Assembly (NCBI RefSeq): GCF_963506605.1
Contig: NC_083292.1
Coordinates: forward strand, 16,368,001 to 16,432,000
Reading direction: 5' to 3'
Length of the DNA: 64,000 bases
From: Zootoca vivipara
Taxonomy: Eukaryota
Numbering within the stretch: position 1 is the first letter of the stretch; every line of letters begins with the position of its first letter. Shown in pieces: positions 1,043 through 7,981 of this stretch. Made by a program: the position numbers and the translations under genes. Below the pieces are notes generated by a model. That model had not been told where the DNA came from. It did no database searches and was given only the letters and a program-made list of their open reading frames with translations.

Positions 1043-1248
1043 CTCATCTCGTCTTCCACCATTAGAAGAAGAGCTAAAAGGTTTGCTGCCACTGCCATGT
1101 CCACCCCTCTGAGGGGGCATCTTATTAAAAGCTTTGCTTTTCTGTGAAGTGGAGCGACGGGATTGGCTGGCAGAGTTATCATTTTTGGGATATGAAGTTT
1201 CTCGTTTACGATTATAACGCTGTTTGGATCCACCTGCATTTTTTCCAT
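1043..1248 (-). CDS. RNF10: RING finger protein 10, coding exon 2 (gene continues beyond left edge)
   Basis: Encodes (D)[22 protein letters not shown]...NKMPPQRGG...NGGRRDE, matching recalled RNF10; AG acceptor 1250-1249, GTGAG donor at 1042; phase 1 to 0 fits exon 1. Confidence 0.96.
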
Positions 1249-4200
1249 CTAGAAAGAGAGATAAAACAGTGGCTTTTAAAAAAAGCAATGCAAGTTCAGA
1301 GTCTCAGGACTGGAAAATGGAATCTTGACTACAACTAAGCTAATCACCTTCAAGTAACCCCTACTGCAACATGCAGCTTATACCATGTCAAAGCAACAAA
1401 AAGTCAGCAGGATAACCCTGGAGAAGCATTGTTAAGGTGCACCACACCACATGCAACCCAAAAATTCACAGAGGCAACAAAGGCATATTTAGTTATTGCA
1501 AGGATGCATCCAAATTGTTTCATGGGCTTTGTTACTACTCATCCCCAGAAAAAGCTACTTGAATATTTGTCTCCTATTTTAACAGTGCTATTCTAAACAC
1601 GTCCATTGAAAAGCAAGTCCCATTGAATTCAGTGGGGTTTACTACCAGTTAACTTGGTAAAAGACTGCAGTCTCAGTGCTTTGGATTATTCATAGTTTTA
1701 AACTGTGCTGAGAGAAAACTGCTGGTGAACAGATTGTTGGCATTAGACCATGTGATTGAGCCTGTCTATAGTAAATAGATCTGTTTGTAAACAGTTCTAT
1801 AGGAGCAACGTTTGTCTTTTTAAATGTGAATTGTATGCTGAATCTTTCTCCCCTCGAGAGCATTCAGTTCAACATATAGTGGGCATTTGTTGAACAAAAT
1901 CATATCTCTTGCATATATTGCAGTATCATGTTAAAAACTTGTTCCAGGAAGATAAACCTTTGCCTCTATTGCTACTAGTTTTGTAGTGGCTCATGCAGAA
2001 TAATCCCAAAGAAGAAATTACAGCTAGGGTAGAGAATAGTGCTTGCACTTCCCTCACTAGGATCACTTGATCCCGGAGCCCACATGGCTGATACACACTA
2101 TAAAAATAGGGCAAAAAGTCTGATATCCTCATGCCTACCTGTGCTAAGAGCATTTTAGTCAGTCATATATTTTCAGCTACAATCACACAACTTCAGCTAA
2201 ATACAGCTTACATCAGAGGTAGCTAATATGATGCTGTCCAGATGTTATAGACAACAACTTCCATCAGCTCCAAGCAGCATGGCTAATGGTGAAGGATGAT
2301 GGGAATTTTAGCTCACAACATCTGGAGGGTACCATGCTGGCTACCCCGACATGCACATATGGAACTTCAGGATTGTTCTTATCTCCATATAGATATTTTT
2401 CAGCATGCAGAGGCGCTACCATGTTATTGCATTTTGTTATATTGCTTGTTATTTGCCGGAGCGCTGCCCATTATGAATGAGATTTTAGGTCAGACATCTA
2501 CTATTAATTGCCTGTATATGCACATCATGCTAAATTATGGTTAGCTTCCTGTGACATAAACAAACTGAAGGAGCCTTAGCAGTACAGTGGGTTTATGCAC
2601 TCCTTTCTGTGCAGCTAGGAGAGAAAAAAGGTTGAAAGCTTTTGCACTGGATTAAGCACAGCAGCCATACTTTCTGTAACAATAAACTGCACTTACATTA
2701 ATTATGGTTTAGGTTCAACAAGCCAACTTCAAATTGCAGCTTGTTTAAACCAACTATAGAGAAGATTAACTACAGTTCTGAGTCCAGACAGCACACCAAC
2801 CTATTGAATATAGAAAACAGAAGAAAAACCTTCCATACTTTCTCCTGGCTGTGCAGAAAGGTCTGGGCAGCATAAAAACCTAAAGCTTACTGCAACTCAT
2901 CCTCCCAGACTAATAATCAAGTTCTCACTTTACTTTTACCAACATCCAGCTGTTGTGATATCTTAATTATTTCCATAGCACTGACAAGTGAGACTCATGA
3001 GTCTATATATATATATGAGGGATGGGGAACCTCTGGACCTCCAGATGTAACTACAACTCCCATCATCCCAGACATTTGGCTATGCTGATTTATGCTAATA
3101 GGACTTGGAGCCCAACAAATGTCAAAAGTTGCCTCTAAGTCTAAAATAATAATAGACAATCATAGTTTGCTAATTACAACCTTCAGACTCAGCTAAACAG
3201 CTACCTACAAGTAGGGAGGGAGTAATTAAGATTCCTTTACAAGCAATACAGGTGACTTCTACAACTTGAATGACATATGGAAGAAGGGTGATTTTTATGG
3301 AAGACATTTGGTAACTGCCAGCCAAGTAAAAGGTCACAATAATAGTGCAACTGCTTGTTACACTGACCTTACCAGTATTTGAGGATTACGTACTCAGAAT
3401 CAGCCACTTGCACAACTAGCTGTGTAGATTAGAATATAATCAGTGCCAGGACACATGGTCTGTGAAAGTCAGAAGTAGCACTTGCTCCACCCAAACCTTC
3501 TATCTCCACACTACATTCTTTAGCAGCAGCAGCAACCAACCATTAATTCAGTGTATCATCAGTCCGAACACAGCACTGCTTCTAATTTTGGTTTATAAAC
3601 ACAGTGTAAACAAGAACCCCGACTTCATAACAAATACCCTTTGGACTTCAAAGACCATATTCCTGCCAGAGAGGGAACTAATGGAAAATACAGAATACGA
3701 TGAGAGAGACAGGCAGGAGCCAAAGAGCAGCCACAGATGAATTAAAAGAATCCTTGGATGCAATCAGTTTTAGATTAGCATCTTGACCACATAATCAAAG
3801 CCTAAGATTGAGAGCATAAGAAAAGCCCTGTCAGATCAGGCCAATGACACATGTTGTCCAACATCCTGTTCTTGTAATAGCCATCCAGGTGCTCCAAAGG
3901 TAGTGGAACACAAGAACACTCTCCCCTCCTGCAATTCTCAGTAACTGGTACTGTATTCAGATAATGCCTCTTAAAAGTAGAGGCTGAGCACAGCCACTGT
4001 GGCTAGTAGCCACTAATACCTTTCTCCTCCATGAATTTATCTATGCCTCTTCTAAAGCCATCCAAGTTTGCGGCCATCACTACCCCCCTATGGAAGTGAG
4101 TTCCACAGTTTAACTATGGGAGGCACGAACAATTACTTTCTTCTGTCTGTCCTGAATATCTGGCATTTCATCTGTCCCGAACTTATGTTTATGGCTGCAG

Positions 4201-4529
4201 TCCTATATACACCAAGACCGGGAAAATCTGCAAGATGTTGTGGAACTTAAAATCATTCATACCTGCCCAAAAAGCCACTTTCAGGGCATGAGGCACCTGT
4301 GGGGTTTGGTCACACACCAAGAACACTGGAAGAAGAGGACTTTTCACCAGCCCCTCCACCTTCTTGTGGGAAAGTTCCTATAGGGCACTGAAGAGCAGAA
4401 CTGGTGTGCTACCCTGTATTTTAACGATGGCTTGCATTATAGCCCACCTTTACCTCTAAGAAGCTAAAGATAATACACATGGGCTCTATTCCTCCAATAC
4501 CCGCAAAAACCCGGCTAGCTTGTTCAGAC

Positions 4530-4640
4530 TGTGACTGGTCCCAGGGTCACCCAGCGAGCTTCCTGACCCGAGTGGGGATTCGAACCCTGGTCTCCCAGGT
4601 CCTAGCCCGGCACTCTAACCACCGCACCACCGGCTCTCAC
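4530..4640 (-). mobile_element. tRNA-derived SINE 5' fragment
   Basis: Reverse-complement B-box (GGGGATTCGAACCC) and A-box (CTCTAACCAC) arrangement. Confidence 0.55.
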
Positions 4641-4691
4641 TGGCACCTACCACACACACAAACTGGAAGCCTGCCCAACTAACTCCCTTAC

Positions 4692-4872
4692 CGCCTTTGG
4701 GCTTGGACTCTCCCCCGGCCGGGCCGGCCGAGTTAGAGCGGGGCTGCTGCCCTTTGCCTGCCGACGCCGAGGAAGAGGAGCCGGCGCCGAGGCCGGAGCC
4801 GCAGGGGTTGCTCTTGTCCATCACGTCGTGGGCTGGAGCTGCTGTTGCTGCGACGGGCGTGCTCTGGAGCAT
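4692..4872 (-). CDS. RNF10: RING finger protein 10, coding exon 1
   Basis: MLQSTP...MDKSN...SSSSASAGKGQQPRSNSAGPAGGESKPKG matches RNF10 N-terminus; GTAAGG donor at 4691; 181 nt, phase 1; second in-frame ATG at 4821 has better Kozak context. Confidence 0.93.
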
Positions 4873-4999
4873 TCACGGGCGCCGCGGAGGCGCTCTTGCG
4901 GGTACTGCGAAGGAGGCGGCGGCTGGGGCTGGGGCCGAGGCCCAGGCTCATGGCCCGGCGGCGGGGTCGGCGCAGCGCAGTCGTCTCGGCCACCTTCAT
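4733..4999 (-). other. Out-of-frame upstream ORF (88 aa) overlapping the RNF10 start
   Basis: GCCATGA at 4999, second in-frame GCCATGA at 4951, TAA at 4735-4733; overlaps the main CDS by 140 nt. Confidence 0.7.
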
Positions 5000-5007
5000 G
5001 GCGACAT
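4996..5007 (-). other. 3-codon uORF (M-S-P-stop) in the RNF10 5' leader
   Basis: AAA ATG TCG CCA TGA; its TGA overlaps the ATG of the 88-aa uORF. Confidence 0.65.
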
Positions 5008-5860
5008 TTTCCTCAATGCTTCCTGAAGAGGGAAACGGAGACAGGTAGGCCTCAAGAGCCGAGTCAGAGGCGGAGGCGGAGGAGCCGGCCGGGCCTGCGG
5101 GGCCCCGCGGACGGAGCAGCGGCGGCGGCCGAGAGAGAGGAGGCGGCGAGGAGGGACGGAGCCCCGCGAGGCCCGGCCCGGCCTTGGCTCGAGGGCGTCG
5201 GGAAGGCCGCAGTGTCGCCGCCCAAGGGAAGCCCCCCGGGCCGCCTCAGCCTCTCTCTCTCTCCGCACGACCGTTGCCGCCGCTGCCCTGTAATGGCGAC
5301 GAATCGCCGACCACAGTGACGGCCAAAGGCCCGGATGTGGCTCTTTTGGGGAGGTGGGAGGGACCAGCCTCGGCTCGTCGCAAGGCACGCCGGGCGTTGT
5401 CGTTTCTCCCTCTACGGACGGAACATAATTGGAACGCTGGGAAACTACAGTTCCCGGCATGCTCTCTTCGTCCCTGAGTCGGGCCTCGCCTTTTATTGAG
5501 AGGACCAAGGAGGACAAAAATAAAAACAACGCTTCTGGTTTGCAGCTGGACCTTGCCGCATCGCCTCATGGGATTTGTAGTAGAATAATGTCTCTTGGTG
5601 CCAAAGCCGCGATAGGATACGTAGCACAATAGTCTTCTGGAGTCTTGAAAAGTAACAAATTTACAGTATTGTGGCGTAACCTTTCGTGGACTGTTAAGAC
5701 AGCTCATCAGATACATTGCTATGCAGTACTGTACTGAATTACAGGTAGATATTTAAAAACACTTATAAACTGCTATGAATCTCATAGGGTTTTTTATGGG
5801 AGACAGTGAAGCAATCTCCCTCTTAGAAACAGAATTATCAGTGAGCGTTAGCCCATAAAC

Positions 5861-5994
5861 CAGGCATCCCCAAACTGCGGCCCTCCAGATGTTTTGGCCT
5901 AAAACTCCCATGATCCCTAGCTCAGGACCAGTGGTCAGGGATGATGGGAATTGTAGTCCAAAACATCTGGAGGGCCGAAGTTTGGGGATGCCTG
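5861..5994. mobile_element. ~135-bp palindromic hAT-type MITE between RNF10 and COQ5 promoters
   Basis: CAGGCATCCCCAAACT...AGTTTGGGGATGCCTG long terminal inverted repeats; multiple copies in window. Confidence 0.85.
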
Positions 5995-6559
5995 CTAAAC
6001 GATTGTGCCACAGTAGATTTTTTAGTCTTTAATACGCCACAGAACTCTTCTGTTTTTGCAGTACAAGGAGAGTTGTTTCTTGAGATTGCATTGCGGTACT
6101 AACGATCGTGATGCACAAACTTTCATTTCACCCCGCAGTTGTGCTGAAGAGTCCTCCATGATGTGGTATAGCTAGGTACCACATCATACTGTGTCTCATC
6201 ATGAGAAGTTGGTAAGATGATCACGATGCATTTACATCATCCGAAGTAGGCATAATTTAGCATTTTCAGTGTGAACGTATATGTATCTATTCAGAAACAA
6301 GCCCAAATGAATTCAGCCTTTTGTTTCTTTTACACCCTATTCTTTACACTTGCAAGTAAGTTCCTCTGACAGCCATAGAATTTAGCCCCAAGAAACTGAA
6401 CATGGAATTTTGGCCTTAAACAAATTCACATATCGTTTGCATAAGAGGAGACACCTAATTTTACATCCACGTCTGAACAGTGGCTATCATTATTATACAG
6501 CTATGGCAATTCACAGCGGTTGTTAGACCAGTCTTGAAAACTCCCCAACAATTCTCTCC

Positions 6560-6920
6560 GATGTTGACGATGCCCGTGACGTCGGCGTCTAAGGAAGAAT
6601 GAGCCCTTGCGAGTGGTTCACGCTTTGAGAATGGGCGGAGCTACAATGAAAGACGCGGCGAGGTGACGTAAAACCATTGCGACACCTGACAAGATGGCGG
6701 CCTCCATGGTTGTTGTCTCCCGCAGGGTTTGGGACGGCTGCCGCCGCGGGCAAAGAGTGCTTCGCCTCCTTCGGGGCCTGTGCAGCGGGGGACAGCGCCC
6801 GGCCACCGACGGAGAGACACATTTCGGGTTCCAGACCGTGTCTGAGTCGGAGAAAAGCGAGAAGGGTGAGCTAGGCGGAAGGGAGTAGCCAGGCCTCGCC
6901 TGAGTGGAGGCGTGGAGGCG
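6560..6920 (+). promoter_or_regulatory. COQ5 CpG island promoter
   Basis: CpG-rich; GTGACGT CRE-like sites (~6577, ~6663), GC box GGGCGGAG (~6633), YY1 motif AAGATGGCGGC over the ATG. Confidence 0.75.
6694..6865 (+). CDS. COQ5: 2-methoxy-6-polyprenyl-1,4-benzoquinol methylase, mitochondrial, exon 1
   Basis: Arg-rich presequence followed by ETHFGFQTVSESEK; G|GTGAG donor; 172 nt. Confidence 0.95.
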
Positions 6921-7080
6921 GAGTTTATTTGTTTTGTTTAAAATTGTCGGTTTTTTGGCTTTTTTAAAACAAAAGTAACTCAAAGCGACTTACAACAGTA
7001 AATAAATAACACATACATTAAAGGTAGCATGAAACTACAATAGAATAAATATCATTTTGTTTTTATTTATTATAACATAT

Positions 7081-7840: not shown

Positions 7841-7847
7841 TATAACT

Positions 7848-7981
7848 CATGCATCCCCAAACTTCGGCCCTCCAGATGTTTTGGACTACAATTCCCATCT
7901 TTCCCAACCACTGGTCCTGTTAGCTAGGGATCATGGGAGTTGTAGGCCAAAACATCTGGAGGGCCAGTTTGAGGATACCTG
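7848..7981. mobile_element. hAT-type palindromic MITE
   Basis: Same family as 5861-5994; 8-bp TSD GTATAACT. Confidence 0.85.

Follow-up and report, generated by a model that had tools for sequence, protein, structure and literature searches.

The minus strand of the 64,000-nucleotide stretch of Zootoca vivipara DNA analyzed here (the window) carries an RNF10 leader with three upstream AUGs (uAUGs), which open a 3-codon upstream open reading frame (uORF1) and an 88-codon overlapping one (uORF2). This leader is most probably the squamate orthologue of the conserved vertebrate RNF10 uORF cluster, acting as a constitutive translational brake. The feature itself is already known: its published conservation spans human to frog, and the lizard orthologue falls phylogenetically within that span. 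Below, we describe the gene, its transcript and the anatomy of the uORFs, compare them with their mammalian counterparts, and weigh this reading against four others.

Results

The RNF10 gene and its surroundings

Homology searches with the RNF10 model were run exon by exon, and stranded raw RNA-seq reads were placed on the window from two runs, X24, which comes from a close relative (organism D), and X21, which is probably from the window's own species; the Logan contig run X1 covered repeats only and not the RNF10 exon. Exon 1 is closed on the minus strand by a gtaagg donor directly after 4693, and its CDS frame reads MLQST...DVMDKSNPCGSG...GESKPKG (Table 1). RNA reads were found in one orientation only, consistent with minus-strand RNA, and 66 reads with loose ends at 4692 matched, beyond 4693, the start of exon 2 at 1248. 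The reads joining the two exons differ by one base from exon 2 of the window in that species. In a full-library HMMER search, exon 2 was 78-84% identical to the best RNF10-like proteins, and weaker matches bear the name "RING finger protein 10" (clusters of Protopterus annectens and Larimichthys crocea). Lizard exon 1 was 88% identical to a Crotalus horridus model found among the RNF10 clusters. This model (KAL7983157.1) is labelled "hypothetical protein," begins at the second Met (MDK), is without internal parts including the RING region and looks like an incomplete gene model. No Pfam family was matched by exon 1, exon 2 or the first exon of the neighboring gene COQ5, all of which are short pieces. 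By the exon 2 homology and the reads joining exons 1 and 2, the gene bearing the leader uORFs is identified as RNF10. The original prediction had made the same assignment from the sequence, and the role in 40S quality control that it ascribed to RNF10 was also judged right.

Table 1. Features of the RNF10 leader and its neighborhood, in window coordinates
Feature	Position	Strand	Description
RNF10 exon 1	4693..5320	-	Leader of ~390-450 nt plus first 180 nt of the CDS; 5' end approximate (broad TSS)
RNF10 exon 2	1043..1248	-	ag/ATGGAAAA ... GATGAG/gtgaga
uORF1	4996..5007	-	ATG TCG CCA TGA (Met-Ser-Pro-stop); aggaaaATGt, A at -3; first AUG of the leader
uORF2	4733..4999	-	88 codons; gtcgccATGa; ends with TAA at 4735-4733
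Third uAUG	4949..4951	-	In frame within uORF2; cgggccATGa; counterpart of the human peptide's second Met (..AMSLG..)
RNF10 upstream start candidate (MLQST..)	4870..4872	-	ccgtgaATGc; weak context, T at -3 and C at +4
RNF10 second start (MDK..)	4819..4821	-	gacgtgATGg; strong context, G at -3 and G at +4
COQ5 exon 1	6694-6867	+	Head to head with RNF10; MAASMVVVSRRVW...ETHFGFQTVSESEKSEKG
MITE-like palindromic element	5861-5994; second copy 7842-7965, 2 kb away		58-nt arms, 91% complementary, 18 nt apart

Two in-frame starts are available for the RNF10 protein. The Met at 4821 (MDK/MEK; alignment position M18) is invariant in the aligned RNF10 proteins of snake, mouse-like, lungfish and fish origin, whereas the Met at 4872 is common only to a mouse-like N-terminal fragment (MPQSS..), with MPQSSPSAAATASD aligned against MLQSTPVAATAAPAHDV.

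On the opposite strand, the first exon of COQ5 translates as MAAS...ETHFGFQTVSESEK. The human COQ5 and RNF10 genes are presumably arranged head to head as well. About 1.4 kb lies between the first exons of RNF10 and COQ5 in the window. Plus-strand RNA was lacking at 5318-5827, which suggests two separate promoters and not a single tight bidirectional one.

Two repeat-like segments flank exon 1. Just upstream of the RNF10 promoter, the MITE-like element is a high-copy squamate repeat; it is covered at depths in the thousands in RNA runs and contigs, with many joints of the "opposite strands" type. Within RNF10 intron 1, a short SINE-like segment at 4553-4620 (..ggtggttagagtgccgggct..ggttcgaatcccc..) appears by eye to be tRNA-derived, is matched by many contigs and has high read depth in both orientations; ARAGORN called no tRNA at this segment.

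The leader and its transcript

Stranded coverage was unbroken from 4655 to ~5317 and essentially nil over 5318-5827. As coverage stops at ~5317, we place the transcription start site (TSS) at ~5261-5320, i.e., ~250-310 nt upstream of the first uAUG, rather than downstream of 4951, a position that would have been fatal to the original prediction; all of the uAUGs are accordingly transcribed. Read depth in X24 was ~65 over 4961-5011, compared to 40-78 over 4706-4960 and 52-70 over 5114-5266. With the uAUGs covered as deeply as the CDS part of exon 1 and the far leader, essentially all exon-1 transcripts appear to carry all three of them. An internal TSS or a leader intron as the major form was rejected, with equal depth on both sides and no joint or loose end listed.

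A strong acceptor-like motif, tttccctcttcag/g, is present at 5033-5021 on the minus strand, 14 nt before the first uAUG. A dip in RNA depth over 5012-5113 coincides with indels of organism D and extreme GC content, and no splice joint was listed there. A minor leader-intron isoform using this acceptor-like motif may nonetheless exist.

The 448 nt upstream of 4872 have a GC content of 73% and contain exactly three AUGs, at 5007, 4999 and 4951. The predicted fold of the leader RNA reaches -228 kcal/mol, yet this corresponds to a z-score of only -0.23 against shuffled sequences, and the comparison with shuffles gave no indication of structure in the leader beyond its GC content. A search of Rfam over 3500-7000 returned no match.

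Anatomy of the uORFs

The three uAUGs sit within 57 nt of each other on the dominant transcript, and each has an adequate context, with A or G at -3. uORF1 shares the frame of the RNF10 CDS, but three in-frame stops, the first of them its own, lie between the two. Its stop is overlapped by the ATG of uORF2 (ATGA, with two bases in common). uORF2 is out of frame with RNF10 (+1 frame), spans both 4872 and 4821 and overlaps the CDS by 140 nt. From the uORF1 stop, the distance is 42 nt to the AUG at 4951 and 124 and 175 nt to the RNF10 starts at 4872 and 4821, respectively. All of the coordinates that had been predicted for uORF1, uORF2, the ATG at 4951 and both RNF10 starts checked on the minus strand, and the predicted distances after the uORF1 stop (45, 124 and 175 nt, the first being the 42 nt above by another count) were correct on recount.

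Shuffles of the 448-nt leader contained a mean of 2.6 ATGs, with a probability of 0.49 for three or more. An ATG-started ORF of at least 88 codons occurred in 17% of the shuffles, and one reaching past 4872 in 44%. The pattern of three ATGs and a long ORF alone is thus within chance expectation for a leader of 73% GC, and the weight of the feature comes from its conservation. Organism D retains all three uATGs; the divergence of its leader from that of the window is only ~2%, so this retention is without statistical power.

The RNF10 uORFs of human and mouse

Much of what the lizard leader suggests has been published for mammals. According to the available text of Ford et al. (2025, Cell Rep, PMC12008924), the human RNF10 5' UTR has three AUGs whose conservation extends from human to frog; for the 3-codon uORF1 specifically, conservation is taken from that text. 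The same text reports that ribosome profiling of human RNF10 placed few footprints on the CDS and revealed translation of at least four uORFs, that the two human AUG uORFs lie in a frame distinct from that of the CDS, and that mutating all five uORF starts raised reporter output more than 9-fold, with single and combined mutants pointing to what the authors call a "complex regulatory structure" (PMC12008924). Knockdown of GTPBP4, which causes a shortage of 60S subunits, is described there as increasing RNF10 protein and the wild-type reporter with RNF10 mRNA unchanged (PMC12008924). The overlapping ORF is itself on record: Sandmann et al. (2023, PMC10032668) list a human ORF of 86 amino acids (nt 347-605 of ENST00000325954) as "annotated," protein-coding (ENSG00000288623 / AC063943.3) and "conserved," and the RNF10 microprotein appears among those affecting viability in their CRISPR screen. 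A "RNF10 uPeptide" of ~10 kDa has been detected in mouse and human cells by tagging, mass spectrometry and an antibody (Zeng et al. 2023, PMC10654591). Control of RNF10 by uORFs, the conservation of the three AUGs, the response to initiation stress and the annotated microprotein ORF are thus already published. The expectation that the feature would be amniote-wide and partly known in mammals proved right.

We compared the lizard uORF2 peptide by eye with the published human peptide and the N-terminus of the mouse peptide. The human and lizard peptides are similar in length (86 and 88 amino acids, respectively), the human one being expressed and the lizard one predicted from the sequence. Both start with MK, followed by RRP and a second Met in ..AMSLG..; because the human peptide also begins with MK (encoded with ATGA), the stop-start overlap is possible in human, too. 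Further downstream, both have APV(D/N)A at the position of the CDS ATG, (H/D)GQEQ over the MDK of RNF10, and a common tail, R(L)LF..Q(Q)RA.AAPL. The lizard ORF ends right after AAPL, whereas the human ORF continues for 10 codons. In contrast, the stretch between AMSLG and APV is unrelated in the two species and five residues longer in the lizard. A similar overlapping uORF in human RNF10 had been described in the original prediction, and the published peptide indeed contains MK.., RRP, AMSLG, APV and GQEQ.

The spacing of the start codons differs modestly. The distance from the second uAUG to the CDS AUG is 127 nt in the lizard versus 115 nt in human, and that from the third uAUG is 79 nt versus 64 nt, the human values being taken from the peptide length; the lizard spacers are thus 12-15 nt longer. 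Both leaders are long and GC rich, with the human uORF2 starting at ~nt 347 of ENST00000325954 and the lizard one ~260-320 nt from the TSS.

The human leader has two further, non-AUG uORFs located more 5'. In the lizard leader, the uORF2 frame is open upstream to ~5245 and has an in-frame CTG at 5212, with A at -3 (minus strand). The third frame holds a 62-codon ORF that begins with a further CTG, at 5249 (also with A at -3), and ends at 5064. The CTGs at 5212 and 5249 are candidates for the lizard equivalents of the two non-AUG uORFs of the human leader described by Ford et al.

The lizard cluster agrees with the human RNF10 cluster of Ford et al. in lying in the leader of the same gene, in having three leader AUGs and in an AUG uORF that overlaps the CDS out of frame. 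To these is added the correspondence with the mammalian peptides, which consists, by eye, of both Mets and five short motifs in common. The middle of the peptide is not kept, while the two Mets, their surroundings and the reach of the ORF are, which points to selection on the start codons and their geometry rather than on the peptide. Squamates and mammals are separated by an estimated ~320 million years.

Discussion

The reading that we consider most probable is that the lizard leader belongs to the conserved vertebrate RNF10 uORF cluster and brakes RNF10 translation constitutively. In this mechanism, 43S complexes would scan ~310 nt of AUG-free, GC-rich leader before reaching the 57-nt cluster of three AUGs. 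Initiation at 4999 or 4951 would commit a ribosome to uORF2, which would carry it past both RNF10 starts to termination 140 nt into the CDS, so that it would be lost for RNF10. Only two kinds of ribosomes would make RNF10: those that bypass each of the three uAUGs by leaky scanning, and those that translate uORF1, resume scanning and regain ternary complex too late for 4951. Of the ribosomes that arrive, some would start at 4872, in its weak context, and others at 4821, whose AUG is strong and universally conserved. The brake on RNF10 would be relieved under conditions that disturb initiation. Function has been demonstrated in human cells only, and the lizard copy is an orthologue by its sequence; from this correspondence we infer that the lizard copy would act like the mammalian brake, and likewise what share leaky scanning and reinitiation would have in it. 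RNF10 marks 40S subunits stalled during initiation, and a brake responsive to initiation stress would for that reason be a neat feed-forward design. A model of this feed-forward kind, with RNF10 rising under the very conditions that stall preinitiation complexes, is proposed in the available text of Ford et al. (PMC12008924).

The original prediction went further and saw in the leader the design of ATF4. Under a strict form of this model, the AUG at 4951 would be used when ternary complex is plentiful and bypassed when eIF2-alpha is phosphorylated, making RNF10 a target of the integrated stress response. We regard this as possible but doubtful. ATF4 is reportedly controlled by delayed reinitiation through its uORF1 and uORF2, which are said to be separated by a spacer of ~90 nt. 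The parts list of this design was borne out in the lizard leader: a 3-codon, 5'-proximal uORF1, after which scanning would be resumed, is followed by a long inhibitory uORF2 that extends into the main CDS in another frame, the main AUG being downstream of the inhibitory AUG, and the two in-frame CDS AUGs lie at distances from the uORF1 stop at which they could catch late reinitiators. The spacing fits less well. Instead of lying ~90 nt apart, the two uORFs of RNF10 overlap, and the first AUG of uORF2, being part of the uORF1 stop, would compete by leaky scanning and not by reinitiation. The 42-nt spacer to the second AUG of uORF2 is about half that of ATF4, short but not impossible for this class, so most ribosomes that have translated uORF1 may bypass 4951 even in unstressed cells. 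With three uAUGs within 57 nt, leaky scanning must also matter. Lizard RNF10 further differs from ATF4 in having two alternative main starts.

Published data bear on the ATF4-type model in both directions. Knockdown of eIF3d, eIF3e or eIF3h lowers the translation efficiency of RNF10 along with those of ATF4 and MDM2 (Herrmannova et al. 2024, PMC11534336), which fits a reinitiation-dependent component, although it is only suggestive. The available text of Ford et al. takes the integrated stress response as the frame of its uORF search and states that the pathway is activated by amino-acid starvation (PMC12008924). Against this stand the published inducer, which is a shortage of 60S subunits, the authors' description of the uORF logic as "complex," and the fact that RNF10 translation is not reported to depend on eIF2-alpha phosphorylation or to respond to ISRIB in the available text of Ford et al. 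(PMC12008924).

It is improbable, in our judgment, that the feature is explained by selection on the 88-amino-acid product of uORF2 as a functional microprotein acting in trans. The case for such a product comes from mammals, in which the orthologous ORF is annotated as protein-coding and conserved, its knockout is among those affecting viability (PMC10032668), and its ~10-kDa band and mass-spectrometric peptides have been found in mouse and human cells (PMC10654591); the length and end point of the ORF are also similar in human and lizard. The viability effect, however, could act in cis via RNF10, and the likeness between the human and lizard peptides is limited to the surroundings of the AUGs and the CDS-overlapping part, the AMSLG-APV stretch being unrelated. 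The peptide matched no Pfam family, and no homologue of 48-154 amino acids was found among 5.8 billion proteins, a blank that means little because same-strand overlapping ORFs are rarely called as genes.

Variation within and between close relatives bears on the same question. The leader indels that separate the window from organism D all have lengths that are multiples of 3 nt (3, 3, 3 and 6), a point in favor of such a product; however, they lie at 4910-4932, 5021, 5066 and 5118, inside GCC/GCG/AGG repeats. Every covering read of X21 departs from the window at 4777 and 4920. The CDS-free part of uORF2 (126 nt) contained five differences (at 4902, 4917, 4920, 4930 and 4932), and all five change an amino acid; such an outcome has a probability of 0.19 under neutrality and 0.004 at an omega of 0.2, with the reservation that the numbers are small and the five differences include minor alleles and within-species polymorphisms. 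The original prediction had noted the Arg richness of the peptide and suggested that it could be functional. Its Arg content (20 of 88 residues) is near the expectation from GC content (15.5% from base composition; P = 0.047), and, like the five amino-acid-altering changes, this lends no support to a peptide under selection. The lizard data show no sign of selection on the uORF2 peptide itself.

We also considered a more elaborate version of the brake, in which slow termination at the Pro-UGA of uORF1 would hold a ribosome exactly on the uORF2 AUG, with scanning 43S complexes piling up behind. The leader would then directly read the load on initiation quality control and would close an autoregulatory loop of RNF10 conserved across amniotes. 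Collisions at stalled initiation are thought to be cleared by RNF10. The idea draws on the ATGA overlap, the Pro-stop ending of uORF1 and a remark on stalled preinitiation complexes in the available text of Ford et al. (PMC12008924), and we hold it to be very unlikely. Finally, that the lizard uATGs are neutral chance occurrences in a GC-rich leader, with no regulatory effect, is scarcely tenable: the ATG count, the ORF length and the stability of the leader fold (z = -0.23) are what shuffled sequences give, but human and mouse share these AUGs and this ORF, with local identity around the AUGs, and AUGs in adequate contexts on the dominant transcript are expected to capture scanning ribosomes.

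A conserved uORF cluster that brakes RNF10 translation thus remains the reading we prefer, and the lizard copy adds to what is known of it in several ways. It independently shows that the uORF2 Mets and the reach of uORF2 into the CDS have been kept between squamates and mammals. It also shows that the universally conserved start of RNF10 is the second one (MDK), which has the strong context. Whichever route ribosomes take to the RNF10 start, the lizard copy supplies the geometry, an ATGA overlap followed by a 42-nt spacer, that any delayed-reinitiation model of this gene must explain.
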